This document shows positions 6,055-63,554 of a stretch of 64,000 bases of DNA, piece after piece. The stretch covers positions 62,001 through 126,000 of the forward strand of contig NIVC01000567.1 of the NCBI GenBank assembly GCA_002269645.1, in the 5' to 3' direction. Source of the DNA: Macrostomum lignano (lineage: Eukaryota). Within the stretch, counting starts at the first letter, position 1. Each line of letters opens with the position of its first letter. The position numbers and the translations under genes are program-made. A model generated the notes under the pieces. That model was not told where the DNA came from, made no database searches, and was given only the letters and a program-made list of their open reading frames with translations.

Positions 6055-6840
<786 letters not shown>

Positions 6841-15401: not shown

Positions 15402-17912
<2,511 letters not shown>

Positions 17913-25259: not shown

Positions 25260-25292
<33 letters not shown>

Positions 25293-28200
25293 GAGGACAT
25301 TAATCCCATAGGATACTGCTGAGGAGGCTGGGGCTGCGGCATGCCCAAATCGGCGCCGCTGTCCATCAGGTTGAGCTTGGACATGCCCATAGTAGGCAGT
25401 GGAGCCTGGGCAGAGTCCAGCATCGTGTGCAGATGAGGCTGGTGCCCGGCGCAGTCTCCGAATACATAATAGCACTGCTCGGAGAAGCTCACTTTATTCA
25501 CTGTGTGGCGAATATAACCCCGCTTCAGCATCTCCAGCGCCATCTTGCGGGCCTCTTTGCGTTCTGAGAAGCCTTCGACTCGGGAGTAGAGCCAGTCAAC
25601 CAGATCTGAACCTGGAGGTGGCGGAAGGTACCAATTAGATGGGGAGTGGAGAATAACAAAGAAAAATCTTGAGGAATAACTAGGAGGTAGAGAAAGTAGA
25701 CAGAGAATGAGAAGTAGATGGTTGAAAAGAAGAAAGATAGAGACTGAGTGGGAGATGGGTGAGAAAGTAGATTGAGAATAAGAAGCAGATGGGTGAGAAA
25801 GTAGATAGACAATAAGAGGTAGATGGGTGAGAAAGTAGATGGAGAATAAGAGGTAGATGGATGAGAAAGTAGATAAAGTATAAAATGTAGATGGGTGAGA
25901 AAGTAGATAGAGTATAAGATGTAGATGGGTGAGAAAGTAGACTCAGAGTTAGATAGAGGATAGACGAGAAAAGATATAGAGACCGGGAGAGAGATCGGTA
26001 ATAGAACTACTTGGACTACCGACATGTAGCGTAAAAAACTACACAGAGGCGCAAATCAATATTTAAAACAATCAGGTCACACAAACACTAACCGATAAAA
26101 GCCTTGGGTATGGTGATCTTCAGCCAAGTTCGGTCGCGAACCTCCAGTCCAGAGTCCGGCAGTGCCATAGCCTTGACAATGGTGATCAGATCGGTTCTGG
26201 TAGTCAGGGGCGGCATCAGCTCCTCGGCTGTGTAGCGCTCAGACTCGGGCAGAGAGCAGGACGATGTGCTCACGCTGGCCGCTGCAATTTGGGGTTGGGA
26301 CTTTGTTATAATCTCCTATGAGGAATCTAATCCCTACTTAATAATCTCCTATGAGGAATCTAATCCCACTTGATAATCTCCCATGAGGAATCTAATCTCA
26401 CTTGATAATCGCCCATGAGGAATCTAATCTCACTTGATTGTCTTCCATGAGAAATCTAATCTCACTTGATAATCTTCCATGAGGAATCTAATCTCACTTG
26501 ATAATCTTCCATGAGGAATCTAATCTCACTTGATAATCTTCCATGAGGAATCTAATCTCACTTGATAATCTTCCATGAGGAATCTAATCTCACTTGATAA
26601 TCTTCCATGAGGAATCTAATCCCACTTGATAACCCCTGTAAGGAACCAAACCCTTCCCAATGAAACCATCTTCCCAGAGACCCCGACGCCACTCACCAGT
26701 AACAGTCAACCGGCTATCGCACAAGTTCTCGCCGCCCATACAAGAGGCCGCAGGCGTAACCTGAGATGACCCGCCGCCGGACACACCGCTAGCCCCGGCA
26801 GAGCTGGGGTCCTGTCGCATAGCATTAGTGTGCAGTACCCAGGCCCTCGGATCGATAGGCCTGACAGGCTCCTCTCTAGGCACTCTCAGATAGTCTCTGG
26901 AGTCCCAGCACTTGGCCACCACCAGAGTAATCTTGCCCGGCTTCTGAACCTGTTCGCGTAGAATTCGAACAGCTTCGTCATTTTCTAAATTTTCAAAGGT
27001 GACGCCGTTCACCTCTAGGAGCATGTCGCCTGGCTGGATGCTGCCTTCGCGTTCCACAGCGCCGCCGCGCATGATTGAACCGACGTAGATGCCTCCTGAG
27101 CCGCCGTTGACTGCCGGGTGGCCAACTATGCTGATGCCGAGGAACTGCACCGCGTCCATGTCCAGCTCCACCGTTTGCACGTTTAGGGAGAAGGCTGACT
27201 CTGTGATGCTGCTGAATGAGGAGGTCTGGAGTGGGGGGGGGGGTTTAAGGGTGATTTTTAATGGCTTTGTAGGCGATTCTATGGGAGCTGAGGGGCGATT
27301 CTCGAAGGGAGCTGAGGGGCGATTCTCGAAGGGAGCTGAGGGGCGATTCTCGAAGGGAGCTGAGGGGCGATTCTCGGAGGGAGCTGAGGGGCGATTCTCG
27401 AAGGGAGCTGACGGGCGATTCTCGAAGGGAGCTGAGGGGCGATTCTCGAAGGGAGCTGAGGGGCGATTCTCGGAGGGAGCTGAGGGGCGATTCTCGAAGG
27501 GAGCTGACGGGCGATTCTCGGAGGGAGCTGAGGGGCGATTCTCGGAGGGAGCTGAGGCTGACGGAATTGCAAGTATCTAATAGCTGGAATGGCTCAAGTC
27601 TGTTTCCTCCTCACCCTGCTAATAGGCGGTCCCCGTCGCCGCCGGTTCTGTCGCTTCCGATTCTGCAGACTCAGCCGTCCGTGAGGCCCGCCGCCCATGG
27701 AGTAGGTGGTGTTGGTGGCGCTGCTGAACCGGCTGCTCTCGGCGTCGTCTTCGCTGTCGAAAAACGAAGTGGTGTCCAAATCGCTTGACAGCATGCTGCT
27801 GGCCGACTCGTAGGTTGCCGATTGGGAGCCGCCAGCCTGGTTGCCATGGTGATGGTGGTGATGATGCCGGGAGTTGTACACTCGACCAACGTTGATTCGC
27901 TGGGCTGTCAATGCGAGGATAGAATAATTTCATGGACTGTTGATTTCTAATTCATGGACAGTTGATATTCATGGACTATTGATATCTAATTCATGGACTG
28001 TTGATTTCTAATTCATGGACTGTTGATATTCATGGACTATTGATATCTAATTCATGGACTGTTGATTTCTAATTCATGGACTGTTGATATTCATGGACTA
28101 TTGATATCTAATTCATGGACTGTTGGTTTCTAATTCATGGACTGTTGGTTTCTAATTCATGGACTGCTGATTTTCAATTCATGGACTATTGATATCTAAT

Positions 28201-36806: not shown

Positions 36807-38633
36807 TTATGTCTCCAACTCAGTCACACTGATGGTCGCCAAAGAATCGTTTCTGCTTCGATGGTGCTGCTTGGCATTCTTGTCATAGCCATCAGCATCT
36901 CTAGAGTCCTTGTCAACTCTAGACTGTTCGGTAGCTATTTTCTTGGCATTTTTACGATTACAAGCCTTAGAGACAGCGATAAAGCTCGCAATCAGACAAT
37001 CGTGAAGGAGTTCAACAGCTTCCAGCATGGTCAGCAGCGAGCAGCCAACGTAAAGACCGAGTAATCCACCTGTGTCAGCGATCAGGTTGGTCAGGTCGTA
37101 GGACTTTTCGATCTGAACAGCTGAACCAAAACTCTTGCTTGTAAATATTCGAACTCGGATGACCTGATCATTTAGGTAGCTACTTCCAATAACGATATTG
37201 TGCGTAGTTAGATTGTTTAGCATTGAGCCAGCCACTTTGATCATGTCTTCATAGCCAGGAAATTGATAATGTGGAAAATAGTACTGCTTCATCTTAACTA
37301 ATTCCTGAAATCTAGCGAGAATATCGCGTTGAAAGGACGAAAATATCCGAGGCCAGTTACTAAACGAGTATCTGTACCTGAAACGGTCCGTCTGGCAAGG
37401 TCGCAGATCAGTGCAGTACTGCTGAATCGCCTTCTGATCCAGAGAAAGACTTGAGTAGACTCCATTGATCAAATCATTAAAAAACCGTGCGGGCGAGATC
37501 TGACCACTGAAAACACGACTGGCATTACGGCAGTTGCTAAGGTTACCGAACTTACGCTCTCTAGGCAGCAGGTGACTCACACAGCCACTCCGCTCCATCA
37601 TCAGCCGGTTGCTTCGTTCAGCACGGCAAAGGGACTCACTGAATGCATAGGTGATCTCCGTGTAATCGAACGGACTGATGATGCGACTGGGCTCAGGGCT
37701 ACTCGAGCACTGCATTCCTTTGCCGAGAATGAGCCTCTCAATCTCGAGGTCGATTCGATATTCCTTGCCCGAGCTGAGCTGAATCATGGACTGGGAGTCC
37801 GGGTAGTGACCAGGTCGAGCAAAGTAAACATTTACACCGGACGCGCCTTCCAGGTTGATTCCATTTTCAAAATCCCATGCGAGAAAGTTTATTCCAGTAG
37901 AGTTTGCGATCGGAATGGGGAGCAGTGAGGAGTTCTTGGGGAAGTCAAAGAATGCCGCATCCAAGAAGAGACCGACTTCCAGGTAACTGCCCTCAGTGCT
38001 CAGGATTTTTCTCTGGTCTGTAGTGGGCTCAACGCGAATGCAGTTTAGCTCAGATGGACTGTAAAACTCAGTTGCAGGAACTGCATTTAGTTGCATGCCG
38101 TTTATCGTTGTCAAAAAAAGCATTTGAAGCAATTTATGACCTAGGCTTTTGCTTATGAGATGATATTCAATGGTTGACAAGAGCGACATAGCAAATAAAG
38201 CTGCTTTAGTTTGGTTATGAGCCACTCCCATCAGTCCGGTGAGCTGAGTGACATAGCTGTTCAGCATGGCTGTGCTGTTGGGATCCAGGATGTACGGATA
38301 ACTGCCCGACATGTTGGCCTTGTTGCAAATGATCAGATCGGGGAACTCGAACTCCACCGAGTTCTGCTGCAGCGTGGTGGTCTCTGGCTGCTCGTTGAAG
38401 GTTTTGATGAAGCTCTGCACCTGTGTGACAAAGCCGGTAAGGCAGAGCGCGAAGCCGACAAGCCAGATGACCTTGACGTAGATCGGACGGGACCCCACAA
38501 GTCTTCCGAGGCCGTGAGCCGTGGTGTCGCTCAGCCATGAGTGCACAGGCTCCCCCAGAACAGCCAGCGGGCGGTCTTTGGGCTTTTTTCCAGGAAAATC
38601 TGATTTCCCGGTTTCCCGCTTTCCATGTGACAT
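36807..38633 (-). CDS. Intronless DEG/ENaC (amiloride-sensitive sodium channel family) subunit, copy 1, 608 aa
   Basis: Pre-TM1 TTAHG motif, TM1 VIWLVGFALCL, FPDLIICN, extracellular cysteines, SFSNWP, TM2 LIADTGGLLGLYVGCSLLTMLE. Confidence 0.93.
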   Translation of the reverse strand: MSHGKRETGKSDFPGKKPKDRPLAVLGEPVHSWLSDTTAHGLGRLVGSRPIYVKVIWLVGFALCLTGFVTQVQSFIKTFNEQPETTTLQQNSVEFEFPDLIICNKANMSGSYPYILDPNSTAMLNSYVTQLTGLMGVAHNQTKAALFAMSLLSTIEYHLISKSLGHKLLQMLFLTTINGMQLNAVPATEFYSPSELNCIRVEPTTDQRKILSTEGSYLEVGLFLDAAFFDFPKNSSLLPIPIANSTGINFLAWDFENGINLEGASGVNVYFARPGHYPDSQSMIQLSSGKEYRIDLEIERLILGKGMQCSSSPEPSRIISPFDYTEITYAFSESLCRAERSNRLMMERSGCVSHLLPRERKFGNLSNCRNASRVFSGQISPARFFNDLINGVYSSLSLDQKAIQQYCTDLRPCQTDRFRYRYSFSNWPRIFSSFQRDILARFQELVKMKQYYFPHYQFPGYEDMIKVAGSMLNNLTTHNIVIGSSYLNDQVIRVRIFTSKSFGSAVQIEKSYDLTNLIADTGGLLGLYVGCSLLTMLEAVELLHDCLIASFIAVSKACNRKNAKKIATEQSRVDKDSRDADGYDKNAKQHHRSRNDSLATISVTELET

Positions 38634-39699
38634 AGCGTCGCTTGAAGACTCTGTGGATCAGTGAGCATGTAAAATTAATATTGTTCACTTTTGCAAAGTA
38701 TACTACAGCATTTAAAACTGTTTATTTAAAAATGACTTACTCACTTTTCAGCTAGGGATTGATTGCCGCCGCAGTTTGTTACTGTATCTATCTTTCTAGT
38801 CTATTCACCAGAATGTGTTTGTTCTACTCTCTGGAAAATCTTTTCTCTTCTTTTATAGGCTGTGACTCGCGGAATATCTGTCTCGAAGCCATGGTAAAAA
38901 TGAAGTGGAACCAGTGCAAAGTGATGCCTCTACTAAGTGTGCACTTCGTGGCTTTGAGGGAACAATAGGGGCAATATACAAATTATGGACTGCCGGATGT
39001 TTCCCGGCCAAAAATTAAGTCCATGATGTATTTTACCATTCTCTCTGATTGACCTCTGCTGTACTGTCGAACGAAGGCCAATATATGCATCTAAATTGAC
39101 AATCGAATTAATATAGTAAGCTGTTTCCATAGTAACAGAAAATAAACGACCAGAGAAGAGAGCATGCAATTTTGAGGCAATTGTTGTTGGCTTATTCGCT
39201 GCAGTTTAGATAATTTGCTTGATTGCCTGACAATTACATCTATGCTTTGACACAAAGATTATGGAAATGTGTATGGCTTACATTGTTCAGGAGTAATTAA
39301 AAGTAATTACTGAAACAATATGGACAACGGACGATCCTCTTTGACAGAAAACCATGCAGTATAAGACAATTGCCGAAAATCACTTACATCTAGGTATTCT
39401 ACTCAAGTCTATTTTTTAGCATTGATTGCAGAAATTAAGTTAAACATCATGAAGCTGCACACACAATAGCGCAAATGCTTAGACAGCCCCTAATCAGATT
39501 AATTCTAATATTGGCTTGTCAGTTAGAGCAAATGAGCATTTTTGCAGTGCTATTGTTATCCGCATTGTAAATTACAATGAATTTCTATGTCAAACAGTTA
39601 ATAGCAATTTACCAACGTATTGTTAATATTTGATGGAGCTGCTCATATATATACTGGCAAAGAACTGGTACTTAACTGAAGTGTTTACTACGCTCATTA

Positions 39700-39771
39700 G
39701 CGTAGCCAGGAATGCGAAATTTCGCACTTTGCCAGCCGGCGCAGCCCACCCCCTTGCCCCCCTGGCTACAC
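39700..39771. mobile_element. Internally deleted MITE relic related to the 41392-41953 element, opposite orientation
   Basis: GCGTAGCCAGGAA at the left end and CCCCCTTGCCCCCCTGGCTAC at the right end are reverse complements of the two ends of the 41.4 kb element. Confidence 0.7.
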
Positions 39772-39994
39772 AGACGGGAGGACGTTTTCATTGCAGGAAT
39801 AATAATAAAAATTCTAAACGTGTTAATCAGTTAAGCAAACAAGCAAAAATCGAAGTAACAAATTTATTTCCAAGACAATGTAGAGAACTTAGTAGATGCA
39901 TTTAATTGATATCAATTGCAAGGACTTGCTACTAAGGAAGAAAATAAAGCAACACACGTAAATGGTGCAGTTGTGATTTCTAGGTGAGTTCTAG

Positions 39995-41037
39995 GCTTGA
40001 GGAGCATTGAGGTATCTGCCTTCAGTCCTGCGCTGCGAAGTTGTTCAACCGGATGCTGTTATCGCGGTTGCAGCCGGTGCTGGATCCGTACCTGCGTCCT
40101 GAGCAGAATGGCTTCCGGGCCACATCGCGGCACGCTGGCGCCGTTCCTGTTCGTTCTGGTGCTTGACTGGGTGCTGCTGACCGCTCTTCCTACCAACGAT
40201 GACGGCTTTCTGTTGCGGCGAAGCGCGGTCGACGTCAACCAAAGAGGCGGCTCAGCGTGCTTGGCTACACCGACGGTCTCGCCCTGCTGTTCTCAACTGT
40301 CGAGGGCGCCCAGAGACAACTGGACAAGCTAGTTTCTGTTGCGGCGAGTGTCGGCCTGATGATCACACGGAGAAAACCGTCGTGCTCTGCGTGCCGGACG
40401 ACATCGAGGCTGCGATCTTGTGCCGAGGTGCTGATGGACAGGTGACAGAGCTTCCGCGTTGTCAGCAGTTCGTCTAATTCGGCGGTCTGGTTCCCGGCGT
40501 CCGCGAGGATTTGCGGCGTCGCCGCGGGCTTGCCTGGGCTGCCTTTCGTTCTGTGAGGGCGGTCCTGCAGTCTGAGGCCCTGCCTGACCGCCAGAGGGCG
40601 GCGCTGTTCCAGGCGGTGATCGAGACCTTCCTGCTGTACAACGCCGAGACCTGGACGCTGACGGAGTCGCTCGAGCAACAAGTTGACGCAGCGCACGCTG
40701 GCCTGCTGCGCGCCGCCTTCAAGATCGGCTACGAGCGAGGAACCAACGAGGCTTTGTATCATCGCGCCGGCCTGGTCCGTCCAAGCAACCTGTTACGCCG
40801 TCGGCGACTCCAACTGGCAGGCCACATCATCCGCGTCGAGACGTACTGCCCACAGCCGGTGCAGGAGGCGCTGCTGCTAACGCTGCAGGCAGCCTACCGG
40901 CGGGGGCAGGCGCGCACTCGGCATTTCGTTGACTGCCTGCTGGCTGACGCCCGGATTCGGCCGGCCGCGTGGCGTTCATTCGTGGCCTGGCCTTGAAGCG
41001 CGCACTGTGACGCTGAACGCGTATTTTGTTGTTGTTT

Positions 41038-41087
<50 letters not shown>

Positions 41088-41116
41088 ATTGTTGTTGTTG
41101 TTGTTGTTGTTGTTGT
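39995..41116 (+). mobile_element. Decayed RTE-clade non-LTR retrotransposon 3' fragment (RT domain pieces) ending in a (GTT)n tail
   Basis: Translations RGICLQSCAAKLFNRMLL..LRPEQNGFR, GTLAPFLFVLVLDWVL, LGYTDGLALL (YADD region), FLLYNAETWTLT...LQLAGHIIR; stops and frameshifts present; (GTT)n at 41025-41116 just after the ORF end. Confidence 0.88.
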
Positions 41117-41391
41117 AGGTTGGATATTATAGTAGCATTCCCTAGTCAACAACACGTACATGTATATAAAATGCCAATTTCACTATTTCAATCCAATAAA
41201 ACATGACAATAGTACGAGAAAAGAAGCATAAACTGAAACAGAGCGCCTTTTTTGACTGGATCGATCTAAACTGATTCTATTTTTTTAACCGTGGCATGTA
41301 GAAGCTAAGGCTATATTTTGATAAAATGTTCACACTTAATTCCAATTTGATGTACATGGATAAAAATATTACAATATAACTGCAGGAGCCT

Positions 41392-41953
41392 CCTGGGCGT
41401 AGCCAGAGGGGGGGGGGCAAGGGGGGCCGGGGCCCCCCCCCCAATCACCAACTCTGGCCTTGGCGCCCCCCCCCCCTAAAAGAAACTGGCGCCCCCCCCC
41501 TAAAAGAAACTGGCGCCCCCCCCCTAAAAGAAACTGGCGCCCCCCCCCTAAAAGAAACTGGCGCCCCCCCCCCTAAAAGAAACTGGCGCCCCCCCCTCTA
41601 AAAGAAACTGGCGCCCCCCCCCTAAAAGAAACTGGCGCCCCCCTATAAGAAACTGGCGCCCCCCTAAAAGAAACTGGCGCCCCCCCTATAAGAAACTGGC
41701 GCCCCCCCTCTAAAAGAAACTGGCGCCCCCCCTAAAAGAAACTGGCGCCCCCCTATAAGAAACTGGCGCCCCCCCTAAAAGAAACTGGCGCCCCCCCTAT
41801 AAGAAACTGGCGCCCCCCTAAAAGAAACTGGCGCCCCCCCCTATAAGAAACTGGAGCCCCCCCCCCTAAAAGAAACTGGCGCCCCCCTATAAGAAGCTGG
41901 CGCCCCCTAACTCACGGCCCCCCCCCCAATCAAAATTCCTGGCTACGCCCCTG
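41392..41953. mobile_element. MITE with hAT/Tip100-like ends carrying an internal minisatellite
   Basis: Ends CCTGGGCGTAGCCAG and CTGGCTACGCCCCTG are inverted (13/15); flanks GCAGGAGC (41382-41389, 2 bp from the left end) and GCAGGAGG (41954-41961) resemble an imperfect 8-bp TSD. Confidence 0.78.
41460..41910. repeat. ~22-26-bp minisatellite CTAAAAGAAACTGGCGCCCCCCCC with variable C-run, inside the MITE
   Basis: About 18 visible units. Confidence 0.95.
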
Positions 41954-42712
41954 GCAGGAGGGCTACGGCTACTCTGATGCAACGCTTCGGCAACATCGTT
42001 CTACAACGCCAGAGCTGACGGCAATTCTGCATGCCCATTCCACACTGACTCCTAAGCACAGACAAGCGCGCCAATACTGTACCCAGGCACAGATGCACTG
42101 ATACACACACTCGCAACAGAATGTACCGCGTCACCGACTTTCTAATCATCCGGCATGTACATTCTCTGTGACTTGGGGGCTGGCCCTCATGGGTGGGAAC
42201 TGGGAAGCACACAACAGCCTCCTGGCTTCAAAAGGTTAACTAGATTTCAAAACAACGCTAAGATCACATTGAACACATTTTCCAATAAGAAACTGTTTAA
42301 GTTATGTTGTAATGGAATTAGTTTCGAATTCATGTAAAACATGCGCTGTAAGTGTTGCTAAAAAGCGATTTTAGAATACCAAATAAAATACCTATGATTA
42401 TAGAAGCATAATTAGTCCAATATTTAGTAGAAACAATTAGCTTCTTGGAGGATCATAAATGAATTGGATTCGTCTGAAGGACGTTCCTACGACCTAAAAA
42501 ATACGTGTTCGAGACGTCTAACTTTCGGTTGGATTTGTAAATTTGTTATACGGGCTCAGCTTTGAAGTATCAAATTTATTGTCTCGTTTCTCTTACGTCA
42601 TATGTAGTTTCTAGTGCATGAGAGGGAGACATTCCTGCTCTACTGCAATGCGTCATAATTCACGATAAAAGCTAAAAAACTTTAAACCAAAGTGCGAAAA
42701 ATTGAAAATTTA

Positions 42713-44263
42713 CGAGGGGTGTTGCAAAAGTTTCTGGATTTCCTTTAGGCAAATTTCTCAACGCAATGATAACAAGGGAAATTTCTGGGTAATATTCTAA
42801 AACGATTGGTCAAAAGCAGTAAAGGAACACATTATTATGTTTTATTAGTGTCAAGCGTAACAAAAAGCAACAATTTAAAACACGTTGCAATCAATCAGTG
42901 TCCCTTCATCATAAATCAATGTACCAAAGTTCCAGCTGCCATCGATCCCTACCAATCACTATCACTGTCACTGATGTCGTTCTTTCTGTCTGGCCCGGCA
43001 CTGTTGCACTCCACATATTCACCGTTAAATGCCATACACTTCAGATAGCGTTCGATCAGATTGTCAAACCCAGCCTTCCAGAAGCTGGAGTCCAGCTGGT
43101 GCAGCGATGCGTTAGCGGCGTCAATGACCTCCTGACGTGTCGTGAAAACTTGCCCACGCATTGGCAACTTTATTGGACCGAAGAGATGGAAGTCGGCAAT
43201 CGCGAGGTCGGGGCTGTAGGCTGGGTGACTTAGCTGACGAAAGCCCAGCTCTTCCACCTTGGCGCGAGTGCGAGCAGCGGCATGCGGACGCGCGTTGTCC
43301 CAAAGGATGAACGGCTTCTGACGCATGATTCGGCGCTTGGATAGAAAGGCAGCACGCAGTTGCTCGAGCTGGTTAATCACATAGTCGGCATTGATTGTCT
43401 GGCCCTGCGGCAGGTAGTCGACGAGTAGCATGCCTCGCGCATTGAACCACACTGCACATGATGTTCTGGGTCCAGGCCGACTTCATGGCCTTTGTGTGTG
43501 GGTGCCGTCCCTTTGGCCCCCACTGCATCGACTGCTGCTTTGTCAGTGGATTAAACATTGCAGCGGCGTCTCGTCCATTGTGATTACAAGCTCCTTGAAC
43601 TTCTCATCACCAAGCTCGTTCCAGACAGCCCAGTTGTCTGCCGAACATCGCACCCGTGCTTTTTTGTGTTCTTCTGTCAGCTCTCGTGGCACCCACTTAG
43701 CGCAAATCTTCGACCAGCCGTGGCGTTATAGAATGCGACTCACAGACAAGCAGTGAACGCCGCACACACTCTCCACTTCACGCACACATGCAGATGGGTT
43801 TGCCTCCAAATATTGGAGCACGGCAGCCGCATTGTTGTCACCTGTGCTGGAACGCGGACGGCCAGAGCGAGCAGCATCAGCGACGCTTGTTTGACCATCA
43901 GTAGCAAGTCAATGGTGGGCAAACACCTGTGTGCGACCCAACGCATAATCACCGAAAGAAGTGCAAACTTCGTTAAAAGTCTGCGTTGGTGTCTTACCTA
44001 TGTGCTGACATGCCATAATAAAGTAACGTTGACTTTCTTTCGAATCAAAATCTGAGTGATTTTTTGGTCGGCTCATTCTCCGAGTGAAATCGTGTGAAAT
44101 AACATAGACCCTCAGGCTTAACTTGGCTCTAATGTAGGCTGTGTTTGTCCTAGTCATGCAAAATTTTAGCCTGGCACGTATTAATAACCAAATAGTTTAT
44201 GGATAAAAGCTCATCCAAATCTGATAAGAATTGTGCTTTAGCAAACACTAGTCCGGAAACTTT
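42713..44263 (-). mobile_element. Decayed mariner (DD34D) transposon; transposase pseudogene about 44076-42949
   Basis: HTH region MSRPK...QRYFI, GRPR, WVPREL, ITMDET, WDNARPH, HPAYSPDLAIAD; internal stops and frameshifts; TA followed by TIR CGAGGGGTGTTGCAAAAGTTTCTGGA at 42711; only the inner part of the opposite TIR (TCCGGAAACTTT) remains at about 44252-44263. Confidence 0.93.
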
Positions 44264-44523
44264 AGAAAATTTGAAAGAAAAAATATTTCTGGGAGACAGA
44301 TATATGTATTCGCATCCAATTGGTCCTTTTATAACTACTTAGCATTATTAGTAGTGTAAATGCATTTTTCAACTGTTCAAAGAAGATTTTCGTGCTGAAA
44401 CTCACCAAGTCATCTTCATGCTGTGACAATTTTGTATGACTACTACTTTTCTTTTGTTGATGAGTCGTGCAGCTGTCTATCAGGATTATGAAGTAGTATT
44501 GGTTTTGTCAGCCTAACTGAGAA

Positions 44524-44797
44524 TAAAGCCATCCAAAGTGAGAATCCTGCCTACGCTGACTGCGAAGGGCCTGGCTGTGTGCAGCCTTAGTCTATGGGCC
44601 ATAGACTATAAAGGACAAGCAAAGTGATAAAAAGCCATCCAATGTGAGAATCGATTGGTCTTTTAAAACTTTGCTTGTCCTTTATAGTCTATGGCTCATA
44701 GACTAGGCTGAACGCAGCTAGGCCCTTCGTATTCAGCGTAGGAAGGATTCTCACATTGGATGGCTTTTATCACTTTGCTTGTCCTTTATTGTCTATA
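44524..44797. repeat. Foldback structure: ~100-bp inverted repeat arms (44524-44625 / 44668-44769) with extra partial units
   Basis: Arm 2 is the reverse complement of arm 1 with scattered mismatches. Confidence 0.9.
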
Positions 44798-45511
44798 TAG
44801 AGCCAGCACAAAGCCAAGAGCGACAAGCGACAAACCAAGGAGGGAAATTCAAAGCGTGTGAATATAGTCGTGTGAAACTTGAATATTAAGGATTAAAGCA
44901 AAATAGTGGAAAACTTAATCTTATTAACAAGTCAACCAGTACATGCAGAAATATAATTAAGTAGAAAAAATAAATACCAATAATTACTTTGCAAAGACTT
45001 TCAAAAAGACAGAACACTGAGAGATGTACAAGAACTCAAGCCGTAACAATACAGTCCTTGATTAATGCAGCCCTTTAAGTAAATAAAATTATTTCAGAGC
45101 GAGGCGAGCTGTATTAAAAGTTAAATAATGCTAATGGTACGCTAATAGGCCTGTAAATTATTTCGCTCATGCAAAACAGAAGTGCATATTCATGCAAATA
45201 TGAGCTAGAAGAAGCTGTACTCCGCAATGGTACTGCTTCCTGAATAGAGGCAAATATTTGGCTTAGGTATGTTTGCTTTTAGCTGCCTAAGCACTAATGT
45301 ATTTGAGCCAATGTCAACGTCTGCTGTGTATTTAACACTCTTGGCTTTGAAGTATTTGACATTTGAGTGACGTAGCATTCCTATAACTGAGTGAAATTCT
45401 TCATTTATTGACTTATGGCATCATCATAATAACTAAATACATGTAGCTACAGCGATATGTTTGTGTTAATGTTTACCAAATTGCGCTCGAAGTAATTCCT
45501 TTGTCTGCAAC

Positions 45512-47239
45512 CTAGCTTTGCAACCAAAGTTCATGACTCAACGTTGAGTTTCGTCCCTTCATTAACTTTCGTTGATCGATAGCCGAAGTCGCAGCCGAGC
45601 TGCAGGCGATCAGACAGTCGTGAAGGAGTTCAACAGCTTCCAGCATGGTCAGCAGCGAGCAGCCAAGGTACAGACCGAGTAATCCACCTGTGTCAGCAAT
45701 CAGGTCGATAAAACTATACGACTTCTCAATGAGAACTGCTGAGCCGAGACTCTTGCCGGTGTACACTCGAATTCGCATCATTTGGTCTTGCAAGTAATTC
45801 GAGCCGACAACTATATTGCGGGTGGTCAAGTTATTCAGCAAGCTATTGGTTATGTTCAAGACTTCATCATAGCCAGGAAAATGCGCAGCGGGATTTTCTA
45901 GCATTTTCTCCTGAACGCGATACTGAAATTCCGGCTAGAAGGTCGCGCTGAAAAGCGGAAAAGACTCGTGGCCAGTTGCTAAACGAGTAGGCGTACTTGA
46001 AACGGTCCGTCTGACAAGGCCGAAGTTTGGCGCAGTATTGATGAATGGCATTCTGATAATTCCAATATGAAGCTGGGTTGTTTTCTTTGAAAAACTGTTC
46101 AGCCGACGCCTGACCTGTGAGAACGCGGCTGGCATTCGAGCAGCTTCGAGCGTGGATAAACTTCCGATCGCGAGGTAACAGGTGACTCACACAGCCGCTT
46201 TGCTGCATCATGAGCTGGTTACTTCGTTCGGCCCGACAAAGGTACTCGCTAAATGCATAGGCCGTCTCGGTGTGATCGTACGGACTGATGATGCGACTGG
46301 GCTCAGGGCTACTCGAGCACTGCATTCCTTTGCCGAGAATGAGCCTCTCGATCTCGAGGTCGATTCGATAGTCTTTTCCAGCGCTGAGCTGAATCATGGA
46401 CTCGGAGTCCGGATAGTGACCAGGTCGAACGAAATAAAGGTTTACACCAGATGCAGTCTCGGGTTTAATGCCATTCTCAAAGTCCCATGAAAGAAAGCTC
46501 AGCTTTGATGTGTTTATTGTTGCAATCGGCAGTAGTGACGATTTTTTTGGGAATTCAAAAAATGCACCATCCAAAAATAGTGTCATCTCTAAATAGCTGC
46601 CCTGATTGCTCAGCTCTGGTCGCTGCGATGGCGTGGGCACCAGGCGAATGCAGTTAAGGTCCCTAAAGCTGTGAAACGGTATTTCCCCAACTGGTGCTTT
46701 TGGCGAGCCGTTCAAGATCAGCATGAAAAGAAACTGCTTCATATGATGACCCAGTTTGTCGCTTATAAGGCGAAATGGCATTGTGGATAGAAGAATGCTT
46801 GCCAACCTGGCTGCATCAAAAAATTTTTAGGTGACCCACCAAAGGCTAAAGTAAGACTTTTGACATAGCTGTTTATTTCGGCTGTGCTGTTGGGATCCAG
46901 GATGTACGGATAACTCCCTGACATGATGGCATTGTTGCAGATGACCAGATCGGGGAACTCGAACTCCACCGAGTTCTGCTGCAGCGTGGTGGTCTCTGGC
47001 TGCTCGTTGTAGGTTTTGATGAAGCTCTGCACCTGTGTGACAAAGCCGGTGAGGCAGAGCGCGAAGCCGACAAGCCAGATGACCTTGACGTAGATCGGAC
47101 GGGACCCCACGAGTCTTCCGAGGCCGTGAGCCGTGGTGTCGCTCAGCCATGAGTGCACAGGGTGCGATAGAATCTTCTTGATTCCTTTCGGTTGACAGCC
47201 TGGATTCGTTGATTCGACAACTTGCTGTTGCTCTGTCAT
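45512..47239 (-). pseudogene. DEG/ENaC subunit copy 2, split into three ORFs by two 1-bp indels (pseudogene or sequencing error)
   Basis: ORFs 47239-46763, 46805-45867 and 45904-45512 are collinear with copies 1 and 3; frameshifts at an A6 run (about 46818-46823) and at TTCC (about 45929-45932). Confidence 0.8.
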
Positions 47240-49317
47240 CGTGAGTCTGGAATGCAGTGTTTTTTTTATGATGTTCCAATGCTTGGGCTATACGAGATCT
47301 GTTTGCAGTTGCAATTGAGACTAAAGGCATGTTTTTGCGAATGATAGATACAGTTGAGGTTTCGTACACTGAAGTTCGTATCCAATTATCGTGGGATTAA
47401 AAGTCTTGGTATTGTCACTGGAATTCTATGATTTTTAATTTTCACTATCAATATGTCAAGAATTGTTAGGCTTACCTTATTTAAATGTTATCCTATCTTC
47501 GTATGCAACGCTGGTGATAAAAATTTTTTTAAGTTCTGTGGCTTGAGCGGGTTCAAGTTAAACCGTCACTTGCTATTTAATACTCTCTTTTTGCCATCAT
47601 CACGAATGTTGTCAGCGATAGGGAGCTAATGGAATGACAAACAATAGATTATTAAACAGTTGAATATCAGGCATAAAGCATGTGCGAGTGACTTATTGAC
47701 ACTAACAGCTTCTCTAGACTGCAATTAGTTAGCAGACTATCAGACCTGATCAGGCCTGAAGCTATTCGACCTATCTTGTCTGTACTTATCCCTCTGTAAA
47801 TTTGCATGGGAGTTATGATATGTTTAATCAAGCTGGGAAGTCGTTGACCTCATCAATTCGACAATATCAAATTGCAATGCTAATGCCGTTCACAACACTG
47901 TAGCCAGCCAGTTGCCTTTTATTGAAACAGATCAAATTTATTACTTCAGTGTCCTAATTTCCAAAGTAAGGACCGTAATTAACACGTAGCTTGTATTCCT
48001 CAAAAATGGATGACTATGGGTTATAGCTTCCATGGAGAAATGAAATGGAGGAGGACACTACGCTCTGTTTTCTTAGAAATGAGAGGATGGCCGGTAGAGT
48101 CGTTGCATGGAGTTTCGGCCATAAACAATTCGAGTATTATTTGCAAATAATCGAGCAAAAAATCCAACGTTTCGTGAGCTGACTAAATGCAAGCGATACG
48201 ACAGATATTCGTTCGTTTCCGGGCCTGTGTTATCGCGTTATCGTGTGTAAGAAGCCGCCGGTTACTCTCTGACTTACTGTACTATTATTAAAAGTGCATT
48301 ATCTGCCTCTAATTTATTCCTTAAAAGGGCACGCTCTAAGTGGTCAATTAAGTCCAAAACTCTCGAAAAAATTTTCACGCTTTTGTCTGATTTTAAACAA
48401 CTCAACAACCTCCAGCTTTTATTTCCAAGAAACTTGAGTGTGGTGTCCTTCTACTTGAGTTGTCCATGTAGCGATCATCAGCTTCTGAACTTTTTATGGA
48501 TTTTATTGACAAGTTTATCTTGAAGAAAGAGTTTAGAACAGTTTAAGTTTTGCCTAAACTTTTAAAGCAATTTCTCAGACAAAACATTTGCCCACGGAAA
48601 AGTATGACTAATGGAAATAGAGAGTTCAATTTATGATTTTCTCATTGCACTGTTGTATGCATTTGGATACTTTTGATGGTAATATTACCGATATCAATCC
48701 AGTTCTCTATGGCGCTGCGTGTAATAAAAACACCTGTCAGTCTGTTCAAACAATTAGTATGAACAATTATAGACTTCAGAAATAGCTAGTAAGCTAGTCT
48801 TGGGTGAATAAAAAACGGTTTATTATTTTTTCGGCTTCAATTTCGCTACTGACGGGAACGACAGTCATTATTATAAACTGAAAAAGTTGCTGAAAACCGA
48901 ATAAGAAAGGGTAAAAGTACAAGAGGGTAGAATGGTGTAAGAGCAGAAATTCAATTAGTGGGCAAAACGTGAAGAGGTGCATTGTAAAGTATTGCGATAT
49001 TTTGGGCAAAAGATCGATTGATTAGTAAAATTAATTAAAACAGTAAAATAAGCAAGGGATCTTGATTCTAATCAAGAATCAGAATTACAACTTCGAATGT
49101 TTTATCAGTTCCAATAATTTGTTGACTAAATGGGCTTGAACACTATTGAATTCTTGTACATGCAAATAACAGACAGTAAACAAAAAAATAAAGAAATTCT
49201 GAAGTTTTTGTTTCCTTAAAATCGATTCGGCTACATGATTTGGCAAATTATAGCTTAATAACAGTAAACAACATTATATAGATTTACTGAATCAGTATTG
49301 TTATACCTGGACAAACC

Positions 49318-51123
49318 CTAAACTTCTAGGTCAGTCACACTCACATTCGCATCGTCGTCTTGCTGATGACGCTCGGCCGCAGCTCTGTCCGTCGTGTCAC
49401 TCTCCATCTCATCGGACTGTCTCCCACTGTTAGCAAAATTTCTTCCATTGAGGGCCGTTGATGCGGTCGAGAAGCAGGCGAGCAGGCAGTCGTGAAGGAG
49501 TTCAACAGCTTCCAGCATGGTCAGCAGCGAGCAGCCAAGGTACAGACCGAGTAATCCACCTGTGTCAGCAATCAGGTTGATCAAATCGTAGGCCTTTTCA
49601 ATCTGAACCGCTGAACCAAAGCTTTTCACAGTGTGCAGCCGTATACGCATCAGCTGGTCATGCATGTAACCCGAACCGATAACTATGTTGTGCGTGGTCA
49701 GGTTATTTAGCATTGAGGTAGCTATATTGCTCAAGTCATCGTAACCAGGAAATTGTACACCAGGAAAAGTGCTCCTTTTTAGCTGAACTAACGTCTGAAA
49801 GTGTTCAATAATTTCGTGCTGAAATGACGATAGAATGCGGGGCCAGTCGCTGAAAGAGTAGGTGTACTTGAAAATGTCAGTCTGACAGGGTCTTCGCTGG
49901 GTGCAGAACTGCTGAATCAACTTCTGGTCCAGATTCGTACTAAAATAAGCCCCTCTTTCTATTTCACTAAAAAACTGACCGACTGACACCTGACCACTGA
50001 AAACTCGACTGGCGTTCATGCAGTTGCTGGTGTTGATAAACTTCCGATCGCGAGGTAACAGGTGACTCACACAGCCGCTTTGCTGCATCAGGAGCTGGTT
50101 ACTTCGTTCAGCCCGACAAAGGTACTCGCTGAATGCATAGGCCGTCTCGGTGTTATCGAACGGACTGATGATGCGACTGGGCTCAGGGCTACTCGAGCAC
50201 TGCATTCCTTTGCCCAGAATGAGCCTCTCAATCTCGAGGTCGATTCTATAGTCTTTTCCAGCGCTGAGCTGAATCATGGACTCGGAGTCCGGATAGTGAC
50301 CAGGTCGAGCAAAGTAAACATTGACTCCGGCTCCAGAATCTAAGTTAATGCCATTCTGAAAATCCCAGGCGAGAAAGTTTATTCCAGTTGAGTTTGCGAT
50401 CGGAATGGGGAGCAGTGAGGAGTTCTTGGGGAAGTCAAAGAATGTCCCATCCAAGAAGAGACCGACTTCCAGGTAACTGCCCTCAGTGCTCAGGATTTTT
50501 CTCTGGTCTGTAGTGGGCTCAATGCGAATGCAGTTTAGCTCCGATGGACTGTAAAACTTTTTTGCTGGAACGATGTCCCTGTGAAGACCGTTAAGAATTG
50601 TCAAGAAGAGAAACTGCAACAGCTGATGACCCATGGCCTGACTAACCAGTCGGTAAGGCATGGTTGCCAGAAGGGTCTTGGCTAGAATGCCAGTATACAA
50701 TTGATTTGGTGGCACGCCCATCATCCCGATGAGCTGAGTGACATAGCTGTTTATTTCGGCTGTGTTGTTCGGGTCTAGAATGTACGGATAACTGCCCGAC
50801 ATGATGGCATTGTTGCAGATGACCAGATCGGGGAACTCGAACTCCACCGAGTTCTGCTGCAGCGTGGTGGTCTCTGGCTGCTCGTTGAAGGTTTTGATGA
50901 AGCTCTGCACCTGTGTAACAAAGCCGGTAAGGCAGAGCGCGAAGCCGACAAGCCAGATGACCTTGACGTAGATCGGACGGGACCCCACAAGTCTTCCGAG
51001 GCCGTGAGCCGTGGTGTCGCTCAGCCATGAGTGCACAGGCTGCGCCAGAAGTACTCGGAGTTGTTCGCTGGTCTGTTTTGATTCTTTTTCGGTGAAATTT
51101 TCATCAGAATTTTCCTGCTTCAT
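49318..51123 (-). CDS. Intronless DEG/ENaC subunit, copy 3, 601 aa
   Basis: Same motifs as copy 1 (TTAHG, FPDLVICN, SFSDWP, LIADTGGLLGLYLGCSLLTMLE). Confidence 0.93.
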   Translation of the reverse strand: MKQENSDENFTEKESKQTSEQLRVLLAQPVHSWLSDTTAHGLGRLVGSRPIYVKVIWLVGFALCLTGFVTQVQSFIKTFNEQPETTTLQQNSVEFEFPDLVICNNAIMSGSYPYILDPNNTAEINSYVTQLIGMMGVPPNQLYTGILAKTLLATMPYRLVSQAMGHQLLQFLFLTILNGLHRDIVPAKKFYSPSELNCIRIEPTTDQRKILSTEGSYLEVGLFLDGTFFDFPKNSSLLPIPIANSTGINFLAWDFQNGINLDSGAGVNVYFARPGHYPDSESMIQLSAGKDYRIDLEIERLILGKGMQCSSSPEPSRIISPFDNTETAYAFSEYLCRAERSNQLLMQQSGCVSHLLPRDRKFINTSNCMNASRVFSGQVSVGQFFSEIERGAYFSTNLDQKLIQQFCTQRRPCQTDIFKYTYSFSDWPRILSSFQHEIIEHFQTLVQLKRSTFPGVQFPGYDDLSNIATSMLNNLTTHNIVIGSGYMHDQLMRIRLHTVKSFGSAVQIEKAYDLINLIADTGGLLGLYLGCSLLTMLEAVELLHDCLLACFSTASTALNGRNFANSGRQSDEMESDTTDRAAAERHQQDDDANVSVTDLEV

Positions 51124-54828: not shown

Positions 54829-57800
54829 TTAATCAACGGCAAAATGCTTTCGAAACAAATCCGGGTGATGAACGCGGAACTGATTCAGTCTATCCTGCCT
54901 GGCTTGCTCATTGCTGCCAGCCTCCTCTAGCAGACGCTGCATCAAATCAACCAGAGCAGCTTCCGTTGTTATTCGACTCGTCCGTTGAGTCTCTTCCGTT
55001 CTGAGTAGATTTCCTGGCTGCTCCTGCGACTGCGCCTGTTTGGGCATCAGCGTCAAGCGTTGCTGCCGCTTCCGAAGTCGCGACAGCAGCTTGGCGCGCT
55101 GGTAAATGTCCATGGGCAGGCGGAACAGCCGGCGCCAGTTGCCCAGAGCCAAGCTGAACAAGCAGCGAACTCGCTGACGCCACTGCCGGATGCTGGACGA
55201 TGCAGCTGCTGAGCGATCCTTTGGGTGTGGGTTTTTTGAGGGTTGGAAAAAGGTTAAGTGATTTTAATAAGCGATGTCAGATCCACTGTAGCATCGATGC
55301 CTACAGAATCGTCATTTGTCAGTGCTTCACGACATCGTGAAAAATCTCCAAACACGAGGGGGCGTTGACCCAGTGGTCTAGTCGCGGCTCTCAGATGTAC
55401 CAGCGGCCCAGGCTCGATTTCAAGTGCAGTCACATTAATTTGGAACTGAATTAGAATCTCGGCTTGGCTCTGCTCGTGCAACTAACGCCCTTAAGAGGGC
55501 CAACCCTCAAGGCGCTTGTGTGCCTGCTCAGGGGAGTCGGTGGAATGGACAGTGATGCCTCTAGTCGGTTGTGTGACAATGTCGCTTAAAGGGCGCCAGG
55601 GTGCACACAGCCCTTGCCATTGAACACTAACAAACTAAACCTCGCGACTTCAGCAACTCTTTATTCATTCAACAGAAAAGAGGTTTTACCGCATTCTCGT
55701 GTCGCAGCTGTTGCCAAGCCCAGCCGTGTCGAGAGTCGGCTAGAAGCAGCTCGGCAAGTTGATTCAGCAAGTGCTGCTGTTGCTGATCCTGATCCTGATG
55801 ATCCTGATGACAGCAGCATTGCACGTAAGCTAGCAGGTTCTCAGACAGTTGGCGATGCCGAAGACTAAGCAGACAGAATGCCATTTGCAGTACCCGACAG
55901 AAAAACTCGGATTCTTCGCTGGTTGACAGCGGTGGCGGTGACGGCTGGACCAGTAGCGCTGCGAAGACGTGACGCAGCTTCGACCAGCCGAGAGGATCCG
56001 GCAGCCGACCCAGCAAATTAATTAACCGCTGCAGCGTCAGAGGATGCCTGCTGGGCGAGTTGCGTCCGCCGCCAGTTGCTTGCAAGTCGTGAGCGAGTTG
56101 GCTGGCCAAAAATTCGCGAAACTTCGGCATTGACGATGAGCTCGACGGAATGGACGCTGTCGGAAACATTAATGACTGGCAGCGGCGCTGCTGCTGAGGT
56201 GGAATTGAGGCGTGCTGCTGAAGGTCTAGGAAGCTTGACGTTGCGCAGCGAGAGCCACGTCGAGGTGACGCCGGTTTAGTGGCAGAATCCGACTGAGGCT
56301 CTTCCATGTGAGCCAGCTCGTCAATCACTGGCAGGTCAATCAGGCGTAGCAGACGCTGCAGGCACAAATGATGGATGCACTCGTCCAGGTAGGAGGTGGC
56401 GTTCGATGGATCGTGGCAAGTGTAGAGCTCATCTAAAAGGATGCAACAGTATAGCTCGCTGAAATTCCTTCATCTACTCAATTAACATTGTTAGTTAGTT
56501 CTGCCATTTAGTTACCTTGGCATTTCCAGAAATCCAAGTACTGATACGGAATTCGCAAATATTTTATTTAGTAACCAACATTTCAGTCATTTTCAGACAG
56601 TCACCAACACGTCAGACATCTCCAGACAGTCACCAACACGTCAGACATCTCCAGAAAGTCACCAACACGTCAGACATCTCCAGACAGTCACCAACACGTC
56701 AGACATCTCCAGACAGTCACCAACACGTCAGACATCTCCAGACAGTCACCAACACGTCAGACATCTCCAGACAGTCACCAACACGTCAGACATCTCCAGT
56801 CTGTCACCAACACGTCAGACATCTCCAGACAGTCACCAACACGTCAGACAGCCACCAACACATTAATCACGATTCCCGTTTAAAGTATAACTCAATACTG
56901 AGCACTAAATACTCGTACCTCTCAAAGTGATCTCAAGGGCCGAAATCGATGCATCGCCTCGACCATCCGTCTGTTCGATGAAGCCTTTCGGCCTCGATAT
57001 CTCAGCGAAGCCGCCTCCTCCATCTTTGCGTCGTTTTTCCACTGGAGAATCGTCGCCTCGGTATTGGTTGTGCTGTGACGAATCGACTGACTCGATGTCA
57101 ACCTTCGCTGCGCCAGAAACGACTTGTTCTTCTTCATCAACGACGTGCTCTTCGTCGAGTTGTTCGTCAAGCTCGAGTTCAAGGCCTCGGCCAGTGCCAG
57201 CCAGGCAGGAGGCGGAGCGGACGTGCTGCAGTCGGCTGGACAGTCGGCTGGGGGCGCCGCGAAGCAGCCCGCGCACCGCCTGGCCACCGCCGGTCAGCAA
57301 TCGGCGGAGCAGCTTTTTGGGAGGGAGAAAAATGATTCGACAGAAATGCACGGATTTTACTACTACTAGTGGTAACCATTTTGGGAGCTTTAAAACAGTT
57401 TTAAAAAGCTTAGCGTTTCTCCAAAGAGTTGGGCGACCCTCTAATGAGTTTGGCGCCCCTCTAATGAGTTTGGCGCCCCTCTAATGAGTTTGGCGCCCCT
57501 CTAATGAGTTTGGCGCCCCTCTAATGAGTTTGGCGCCCCTCTAATGAGTTTGGCGCCCCTCTAATGAGTTTGGCGCCCCTCTGACGCCCCTCTAATGAGT
57601 TTGGCGCCCCTCTAATGAATTTGGCCCCCTCTAATGAGTTTGGCGCCCCTCTAAGTTTGGCGCCCCTCTGAAGTTTGGCGCCCCTCTAATGAGTTTGGCG
57701 CCCCTCTAAGTTTGGCGCCCCTAATGTTTGGCGTCTGAGTTTGGCCCTCTAATGAGTTTGGCGCCCTCTAATGAAATGAGTTTGGCGCCCCCTCTAATGA

Positions 57801-59384: not shown

Positions 59385-60516
59385 AGGAGGAGTCACCTGT
59401 TAGACACAGATGAGTCACCTGTTAGACACACAGGAGTCACCTGTTAGACACAAAGGAGTCACCTGTTAGACACAGAGTAGACACCTGTTAGACACAGATG
59501 AGTCACCTGTTAGACACAGAGGAGTCACCTGTTAGACACAAAGGAGTCACCTGTTAGACACAAAGTAGTCACCTGTTAGACACAGAGTAGACACCTGTTA
59601 GACACAAAGGAGTCACCTGTTAGACACAGAGTAGACACCTGTTAGACACAAAGGAGTCACCTGTTAGACACAAAGGAGTCACCTGTTAGACACAGATGAG
59701 TCACCTGTTAGGCACAGATGAGTCACCTGTTAGACACAAAGGAGTCACCTGTTAGACACAGAGTCTAGACACCTGTTAGACACAGAGGAGTCACCTGTTA
59801 GACACAAAGGAGTCACCTGTTAGACACAGAGAAGACACCTGTTAGACACAGATGAGTCACCTGTTAGACACAGATGAGTCACCTGTTAGACACAAAGGAG
59901 TCACCTGTTAGACACAAAGTAGTCACCTGTTAGACACAGAGTAGACACCTGTTAGACACAAAGGAGTCACCTGTTAGACACAGAGTAGACACCTGTTAGA
60001 CACAAAGGAGTCACCTGTTAGACACAAAGGAGTCACCTGTTAGACACAGATGAGTCACCTGTTAGGCACAGATGAGTCACCTGTTAGACACAAAGGAGTC
60101 ACCTGTTAGACACAGAGTCTAGACACCTGTTAGACACAGAGGAGTCACCTGTTAGACACAAAGGAGTCACCTGTTAGACACAGAGAAGACACCTGTTAGA
60201 CACAGATGAGTCACCTGTTAGACACAGATGAGTCACCTGTTAGACACAAAGGAGTCACCTGTTAGACACAAAGTAGTCACCTGTTAGACACAGAGTAGAC
60301 ACCTGTTAGACACAAAGGAGTCACCTGTTAGACACAGAGTAGACACCTGTTAGACACAAAGGAGTCACCTGTTAGACACAAAGGAGTCACCTGTTAGACA
60401 CAGATGAGTCACCTGTTAGACACAGATGAGTCACCTGTTAGACACAAAGGAGTCACCTGTTGGACACAGAGTCTAGACACCTGTTAGACACAGAGGAGTC
60501 ACCTGTTAGACACAGA
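59385..60516. repeat. 22-bp minisatellite GAGTCACCTGTTAGACACA(GAT/AAG) with a 354-bp higher-order period
   Basis: Visible units; the marker variant GAGTCTAGACACC recurs at 59761, 60115 and 60469. Confidence 0.97.
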
Positions 60517-62290: not shown

Positions 62291-62774
62291 AGTTTCTGCT
62301 ATAACCCGATCTCTACCCAATGTACTTTTTAAGGAATTTTATCTAGGCAAACAAAATCGCGCCAACTTAAATCTTGAAATCCAATTTCAGCCGTCAAAGT
62401 TTGCGGAGTCTACGCCAGAGCTGACGGAGAGATCAAACGCTGGATTGAATTGGTGACTGGACGTCCCCTGTGAACTCGCTGAATAATATTAGCCATGCCC
62501 TTACTGTGCTACTAGTCAGTAAGCTATTGAAAAAATCAAATAAAGTTTTGATTGTTCCTGAGATAAACAATAGCTCTATTAATTGTTAATGATTTATTTT
62601 TTCATATGTTCCAATTCTTTTTCCTATTTTTCATCTGTAATAGCAAGAAAATGATATTTTAAAGCATTAAAGTACATTTGATTTTATGAGCTGAAGTACT
62701 GTAAAAATAAAATATACAAATTTAGCTTCATTCCTGTCATTCTCTTTTTGTTGCTCTCTTGACTCTCTCACACT

Positions 62775-63480: not shown

Positions 63481-63554
63481 TGTCACTATCTTCCTGGCAC
63501 TCTCTTCCTTTCACGCATTACCTGTCACTCTCATTCACTCTCATCCTGTCCCTC

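Follow-up and report, generated by a model that had tools for sequence, protein, structure and literature searches.

On contig NIVC01000567.1 of the assembly Mlig_3_7 (GCA_002269645.1) of the flatworm Macrostomum lignano, line DV1, three DEG/ENaC channel genes lie in tandem, head-to-tail, all on the minus strand and all without introns. Within the 64,000 nt of this contig that were analysed (hereafter the window), the three coding sequences (CDSs) form a mosaic in which near-identical blocks alternate with blocks of saturated synonymous divergence (dS), and very probably they represent an ancient triplet that has been homogenised repeatedly by short-tract interlocus gene conversion. Recurrent segmental conversion among three intronless paralogues had been suggested in the initial annotation of this stretch. 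The conversion is well supported by tracts of low dS, permutation tests, incongruent nearest neighbours and dissimilar flanks; the trio is indeed intronless, but copy 2 is not an intact open reading frame (ORF), as it has two frameshifts in the assembly. The genes are:

36807-38633, minus strand: copy 1 (c1), intact single-exon ORF of 608 aa, Pfam ASC E = 1.5e-39
45512-47239, minus strand: copy 2 (c2), DEG/ENaC gene broken up into three ORFs (frames -1, -3 and -1)
49318-51123, minus strand: copy 3 (c3), intact single-exon ORF of 601 aa, Pfam ASC E = 1.2e-34

Ten blocks, named A to J along the gene, were delimited from a MAFFT alignment of the three CDSs by sliding-window identity and maximal-segment analysis, and their structural content was taken from an AlphaFold model of c3. 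TM1 and TM2 denote the two transmembrane segments. In residues of c3 the blocks are as follows:

1-27: block A, N-terminal tail, unalignable
28-111: block B, HG motif, TM1 and beta1-beta2, near-identical in all three copies
112-187: block C, finger helices, divergent
188-252: block D, beta-ball/upper-palm strands plus a low-confidence loop, near-identical in c1 and c3 only
253-266: block E, low-confidence loop, divergent
267-322: block F, central palm/beta-ball strands, near-identical in all three copies
323-362: block G, beta10 and the first thumb helix (alpha4), near-identical in c2 and c3 only
363-510: block H, remaining thumb, three helices as in FaNaC, and beta11-12, divergent
511-545: block I, TM2 with the G-C-S filter motif, near-identical in all three copies
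546-601: block J, C-terminal tail, unalignable and shorter in c2

At the nucleotide level the homogenised segments occupy these positions:

c1 38268-38551, c2 46861-47161, c3 50739-51041, minus strand: block B tract, 96-98% identical in all pairs
c1 37665-38068 and c3 50155-50558, minus strand: c1/c3 tract of 404 bp
c1 37878-38068 and c3 50368-50558, minus strand: block D, in which c3 is c1-like
c1 37670-37818, minus strand: block F in c1, 94.6% identical to c2 and situated inside the 404-bp c1-c3 tract
c2 46155-46428 and c3 50035-50308, minus strand: blocks F and G as one tract of 274 bp, 97.1% identical, in which c3 is c2-like
c1 36997-37087, c2 45615-45705, c3 49487-49577, minus strand: block I

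Block B of c1 is 98.1% identical to c3 and 96.8% to c2. In block I, c2 and c3 are 100% identical over 91 bp and c1 differs from both at 3-4 sites over ~90 bp. The block shared by c1 and c3 only, the central block and the block shared by c2 and c3 only are contiguous, and c3 changes from c1-like to c2-like between 50309 and 50293. The nearest neighbours conflict along the gene: block D pairs c1 with c3, blocks G and I pair c2 with c3, and the variable blocks are star-like. A block common to c1 and c2 and absent from c3 was not found, the longest exclusive c1-c2 run being 5 sites (p = 0.085 by permutation). No DNA similarity was detected beyond 36982-38560, 45596-47172 and 49468-51050, so that resemblance stops inside the CDS at both ends and no flank could be aligned.

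Synonymous divergence was estimated by the Nei-Gojobori method, and a protein-guided codon alignment reproduced the values. For all pairs, dS is 0.03-0.09 in block B, ~0.22 in block F and 0.04-0.3 in block I. In block D it is 0.08 between c1 and c3 and 1.4-1.7 against c2, while in block G it is 0.08 between c2 and c3 and 0.9-1.25 against c1. The variable blocks C and H, at 1.4-2.3, are saturated. Overall, synonymous divergence differs more than 15-fold between blocks of one 1.8-kb gene.

In GENECONV-like permutation tests the c1-c3 and c2-c3 tracts were each reached in 0 of 10,000 permutations (p < 1e-4); with third codon positions alone, the outcome was 0 of 10,000 for c1-c3 and p = 0.0008 for c2-c3. 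The run of 27 concordant polymorphic sites joining c1 and c3 in block D was likewise reached in none of 10,000 permutations. A triplet walk with c3 as the child was matched by 13 of 20,000 permutations, a statistic that becomes biased when one step type outnumbers the other (as seen with c1 or c2 as the child), and we relied on the run-length permutations. Where all copies agree in the amino acid, they also use one and the same codon at 132 of 152 positions (87%) in the three-way blocks vs 41 of 108 (38%) in the variable blocks (Fisher p = 1.3e-16), and so few runs of identical codons did not occur in any of 100,000 permutations. Uniform divergence is rejected by the permutation tests, by the codon-identity test and by the opposite neighbours in adjacent blocks. 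Every shared block proposed in the initial annotation was recovered, in place or very nearly so; sliding identity, per-block dS and the GENECONV-like tests bear out the mosaic, with dS not uniform. The homogenised modules also coincide, in the AlphaFold model, with the pore and scaffold as had been suggested: the HG motif, TM1 and beta1-2 lie in block B, the central palm/beta-ball strands in block F, and TM2 in block I.

Could such tracts have arisen without any conversion, through very strong nucleotide-level constraint imposed, for instance, by codon usage, by an RNA element or by an overlapping frame? We regard this as hardly credible. In line with such constraint, protein conservation peaks in blocks B, F and I, and each of the three copies has an open alternative frame spanning block B. 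However, 4-fold degenerate sites are identical at 90-100% within tracts and at 36-52% outside (38-41 of 42 in block B vs 10-17 of 28-34 in block H), and constraint of this kind cannot yield blocks D and G, in which two copies are nearly the same and dS to the remaining copy is saturated. The open alternative frame comprises:

38218-38721, 46830-47396 and 50681-51100, minus strand: alternative stop-free frame of 140-189 codons, overlapping the TM1 block in all copies

Dual coding of block B was rejected, as 0 of 20 and 4 of 22 changes are synonymous in the two alternative frames vs 12 of 20 in the main frame; the alternative frame looks like a by-product of GC-rich homogenised sequence. An RNA element was rejected as well: the RNA folding z-score of block B in c3 was -0.21, giving no structural RNA signal, and a search of the 16-kb region against Rfam returned no match.

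The way in which the tracts end bears on two other histories, namely that c3 arose as a hybrid by unequal crossing-over, or that duplication was recent and the variable blocks have since been replaced by sequence from diverged donors in other parts of the genome; taken together, these are highly unlikely. The switch at 50293-50309, with c3 c1-like upstream and c2-like downstream of it, is what a crossover hybrid might display, but a hybrid should stay parental-like into its flanks, which is true neither of blocks A, C, H and J nor of any flank. Recent duplication should leave similar flanks or termini, of which none were seen. Outside donors would find a suitable setting in a genome rich in paralogues and repeats; on the other side, no protein more than 32% identical was present in a collection holding both M. 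lignano annotations, which leaves room for unannotated donors. What is seen instead are patches of the kind expected from conversion, several of which alternate within 1.6 kb without flank similarity.

An origin of the mosaic in assembly or polishing has a very slight chance of being correct. Under it, c3 would be a misjoined chimera, or Pilon would have homogenised the paralogues with mis-mapped short reads. Mlig_3_7 was assembled from PacBio reads with Canu and then polished with Pilon, and by REAPR only 64% of its bases are free of error (PMC5730564). It contains three subgenomes (S, L1 and L2) that are ~2% apart at the level of single-nucleotide polymorphisms, and 36% of the assembly length is in subgenome-chimeric scaffolds (PMC10733133). 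The frameshifts of c2 also fall in a homopolymer run and in a short GC run. Yet the patches of 90-400 bp alternate several times in 1.6 kb, far under the read length, and the known chimerism joins subgenomes that are ~2% diverged and not paralogues that are ~40% different. Short reads cannot mis-map across blocks that are 55-65% identical, and the tracts hold 0-11 private differences, among which synonymous and non-synonymous changes stand in a coding-like ratio.

The disrupted frame of c2 is composed of the following parts:

46763-47239, 45867-46805 and 45512-45904, minus strand: ORF pieces of c2, colinear by tblastn
46816-46826, minus strand: frameshift 1, one base lost in an A5T6 homopolymer run
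45932-45936, minus strand: frameshift 2, one additional base in GCCGG, by which the original frame is regained

In three-frame translation, the ATG frame gives ...GGSPKNF at the first frameshift and the homologous ...DAARLASILLSTMPFR picks up in another frame; at the second, ...FQRDLLA stands in one frame and EFQYRVQEK... in the next. Both are single-base changes, mutually compensating and 880 bp apart, and c2 is free of stops over 565 codons once the two junction codons are removed. Relaxed constraint is not apparent from the 5 synonymous and 3 non-synonymous changes that are private to c2 within the shared blocks. The frameshifts are either residual PacBio indel errors or the mark of a very young pseudogene.

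For gene conversion the following course of events is the most probable. A tandem triplication of single-exon DEG/ENaC genes would have come first; that it is old is shown by the saturated background dS, the unalignable tails and the dissimilar flanks. The copies would then have diverged to saturation. Later, stretches of ~90-400 bp would have been copied non-reciprocally between the copies several times, leaving at least five tracts: B, F and I common to all, D confined to c1/c3 and G to c2/c3. Conversion would persist where purifying selection keeps the copies alike enough to pair, so that heteroduplexes form, and lapse where they have diverged. The outcome would be a constant pore and scaffold together with variable peripheral modules, with no selection for shuffling required. 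In this course c3 may have been the hub of exchange. The tracts, with dS of 0.03-0.25, are probably for the most part older than the ~2% divergence of the M. lignano subgenomes.

The distribution of the tracts follows the conservation of the family across 94 distant homologues. The information content is 1.61 bits in block B, 1.27 in F and 2.37 in I, ~1.0 bits in D and G, and 0.5-0.9 in the blocks that were never homogenised. Since the three-way tracts are the most conserved segments of the family, passive homology-dependent conversion predicts the same pattern.

Several points weigh against the conversion reading or limit how far it can be taken. Three sequences without an outgroup cannot fix the direction, number and order of events. 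This also affects the earlier description of c3 as a chimera, which did not hold up as worded: the data are equally compatible with c3 having received c1-like and c2-like segments and with c3 having donated D to c1 and G to c2. Private changes in the shared blocks are fewest in c3 (3, compared with 8 in c2 and 14 in c1), which fits the role of a hub and carries no direction. Moreover, the comparison is one of paralogues within a single genome. A few of the rare differences within tracts could be polishing artefacts of a Pilon-polished PacBio assembly with three ~2%-diverged subgenomes. Finally, GC-biased conversion is not clearly seen.

As to the number of events, a history of only two (a c1-c3 tract at alignment columns 578-981, followed by a c3-to-c2 tract at columns 828-1101) was considered and fitted poorly. 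At 7 of the 43 sites in columns 843-885, c1 is distinct from both c2 and c3, so that more than two events are required.

With regard to base composition, the initial annotation had noted a GC-rich TM1 block. The richness itself is confirmed, block B having a GC content of 0.58 and a GC content at third codon positions (GC3) of 0.81 next to GC3 values of 0.46-0.58 in the variable blocks; the case for conversion as its cause has become weaker. PAA61607.1/Mlig010186 and PAA81733.1/Mlig031004, the closest paralogues annotated in M. lignano, are 25-32% identical to c3 and have a GC3 of 0.78-0.87 from end to end, and block I, though homogenised, reaches 0.53-0.59. Because these unconverted paralogues are as GC-rich and the TM2 block is not, there is little ground for reading the GC3 of block B as a footprint of conversion. 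Block B may simply keep the composition usual in the family, the rest of the trio genes having decayed toward their AT-rich surroundings, and GC-biased repair could contribute to the GC that it has retained.

The same arrangement of tracts raises the question of whether the division into constant and variable modules has been selected. In such a design, which the initial annotation had put forward as a combinatorial channel repertoire, conversion of the pore and assembly parts would be favoured for heterotrimers, and exchange or divergence of finger, beta-ball and thumb would serve the sensing of ligands or mechanical stimuli; we judge this unlikely. In its favour, the segments homogenised in every copy are TM1, the palm core and TM2, and those common to a single pair belong to extracellular modules, namely beta-ball/upper palm and thumb alpha4. 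The HG and GxS motifs, like the conserved cysteines, are retained by both intact copies. On the opposite side, passive homology-dependent conversion predicts the positions of the tracts equally well, the genes are without a model in the annotations and one copy is frameshifted. The ratio of non-synonymous to synonymous divergence (dN/dS) in the variable blocks is ~0.1-0.25 except for one noisy pair, around ~0.2 overall, which indicates purifying and not diversifying selection, the estimate being crude because dS is saturated there. The more specific proposition, that conversion keeps the pore, palm core and TM segments identical for the sake of heterotrimers and that beta-ball, finger and thumb are kept different or swapped as cassettes, we hold to be rather doubtful. 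If it were true, one neuron type would gain combinatorial ligand or mechanical sensitivities, and a constant-region/variable-region logic would apply to an ion-channel family. Passive, repeated conversion in an old triplet would account for the mosaic without it.

The membership of the trio in the DEG/ENaC family is secure. Both c1 and c3 cover positions 3-455 of the 455 of the Pfam ASC profile (PF00858), the match spanning residues 35-542 in c1, and the pieces of c2 match too. An in-frame stop is located 9 codons 5' of the ATG of c1. The AlphaFold model of c3 (pLDDT 85.5, pTM 0.80) predicts TM1 as the helix 51-81 and TM2 as the helices 514-530 and 532-559. The translation of c3 contains the HG motif as TAHGL (H40-G41) and the TM2 motif as LGCSLL (G530-C531-S532); G41, G530 and S532 are invariant or nearly so across the family alignment. 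The cysteines C103, C198, C309, C336, C351, C368 and C413 are kept.

When a profile built from c1, c3 and related M. lignano proteins was compared with the PDB, it matched FaNaC with E = 8.5e-83 (7yvb) and 1.4e-73, and ASIC1 with 5.7e-51. Foldseek likewise placed the model of c3 closest to a FaNaC structure (8on8, E = 3e-25), the order being FaNaC, ASIC, ENaC with E from 3e-25 to 7e-15. The trio belongs to a divergent flatworm clade to which FMRFamide-gated channels are nearest by sequence and fold.

The searched protein collection includes the NCBI and UniRef gene sets of M. lignano. A word-indexed search of it with c3 found nothing; in an exhaustive HMMER search the best relative was 32% identical and the top six were all M. 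lignano proteins, so that metagenome and bacterial sources contributed no close relative. None of c1 to c3 has a gene model in either M. lignano annotation of this collection, no called gene is recorded for c1, and any copies of the trio in the other subgenomes are likewise unannotated. The annotation of Mlig_3_7 is transcriptome-based, with ~5 introns per gene on average (PMC5730564). That the trio is unannotated in a transcriptome-based annotation suggests low or very restricted expression.

The window trio and the nearest paralogues belong to the same species and family, but PAA61607.1 and PAA81733.1 have two introns each and are the sole DEG/ENaC gene within 10 kb on either side, whereas the trio is intronless, tandem and of lower overall GC3 (0.56-0.59). 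It is unusual in being intronless and tandem at once. At the paralogue loci L006 (10001-12579) and L007 (10001-12387), intron 1 is equivalent to c3 residues 69-71, in TM1 and in the middle of block B, and intron 2 lies at about c3 residues 368-399, just past the end of block G. An origin of the trio by intron loss or retrocopy is possible.

The spacer between c1 and c2 (6.9 kb) is full of repeat debris, while that between c2 and c3 measures only ~2 kb. The first contains:

40187-43452: repeat and transposon debris
40187-40832: dispersed repeat, GC-rich (57%), bearing ORFs in both orientations and matching locus L002 at 86%
41026-41116: (TTG)30 array (TRF)
41469-41907: 24-bp tandem array (TRF)
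42949-43452: mariner-type transposase remnant, Pfam Transposase_1 E = 5.4e-08
44525-44796: inverted repeat of ~245 bp

L002 is a more diverged paralogous region, in which the aminopeptidase is 84% identical. Positions 1-23000 of the window have two more colinear copies in the assembly, 92-99.8% identical:

NIVC01000245.1:633404-655740: locus L003, 92-99.8% identical to the window
NIVC01003579.1:25717-47420, reversed: locus L004, 93-98% identical to the window

L003 and L004 are presumably the other two subgenomes. They differ from the window mostly in the lengths of tandem-repeat arrays, and the compared stretches end ~14 kb short of the DEG/ENaC cluster. A 22-bp array at 59.4-60.5 kb of the window adjoins the aminopeptidase in L003 and L004, where the window does not have it. 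The other features of the window are:

3358-4698, plus strand: rhodopsin-family G protein-coupled receptor, single exon, 446 aa, Pfam 7tm_1 E = 7e-31
11064-13400, plus strand: M1 aminopeptidase, single exon, 778 aa
26590-27180 (PDZ) and 25004-25543 (C-terminal), minus strand: Dishevelled exons, 99% identical to a UniRef M. lignano fragment
54829-56367 (one ORF at 55669-56367), minus strand: ORFs of 232 and 110 aa, GC3 0.59, coding-like composition
5901-6897, 7631-8473, 9699-10657, 16928-17558, 21200-22950, 59387-60516 and 62759-63661: minisatellite arrays

For the Dishevelled copy at 25004-27180 no NCBI gene model was matched in the protein search, and at its paralogue locus L005 (84% identical) there is no DEG/ENaC gene within 10 kb. 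The ORFs at 54829-56367 had neither a Pfam match nor a relative in the protein collection; they may be an unannotated gene downstream of the cluster. The minisatellites yield spurious repetitive ORFs, e.g. (SIYL)n, and are consistent with the reported tandem-repeat content of 15% of the genome.

In the trio, concerted evolution is limited to the modules that form the pore and scaffold of a trimeric ion channel, and it is clean enough to be quantified; the case also draws attention to three channel genes that neither M. lignano gene set of the searched collection includes. Mosaics of this kind can mislead whole-gene trees of lineage-specific DEG/ENaC expansions, for which per-block analysis is therefore needed. 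The genes are also natural chimeras for structure-function work, c3 combining a c1-type beta-ball with a c2-type thumb helix, in a flatworm model in which transgenesis is available.

Compared with FaNaC (7yvb, 8on7-8ona), the best profile match (E = 8.5e-83, see above) and the best structural match (TM-score 0.60/0.68) go together with a common HG motif, GxS motif, cysteine framework and extra helices before beta11; the trio differs in an identity of only 17-18% and in its filter motif G-C-S. Three M. lignano channels on an M. lignano/phoronid branch beside the FaNaCs gave no response to FMRFa or related peptides (bioRxiv 10.1101/2022.03.23.485451). The trio is not classed as FaNaC here.

In the spider mite Tetranychus urticae, more than 100 lineage-specific ENaCs have been described, mostly intronless and clustered, with pseudogenes and transposon insertions; possible conversion was raised for its gustatory-receptor clusters only, and no ENaC mosaic was described (PMC5203786). 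The M. lignano trio resembles these ENaCs in being highly divergent, intronless and clustered, with a possible pseudogene and transposon debris alongside, and differs in belonging to another phylum and in forming a triplet. Our literature search found no report of gene conversion among DEG/ENaC genes.

Interlocus conversion with mosaic identity is classical in tandem gene families such as the primate red/green opsins, RHD/RHCE, the globins and the olfactory and gustatory receptor clusters. The comparison made here differs from those in covering three copies and paralogues only. With them the trio has in common linked paralogues on the same strand, tracts of near-zero dS within old divergence and segment-wise incongruence; in both, the tracts gather in conserved parts and the functionally distinct parts stay different. 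The trio leaves the knowledge of conversion itself unchanged and is a new example of a known process, in a family in which conversion had not been documented.

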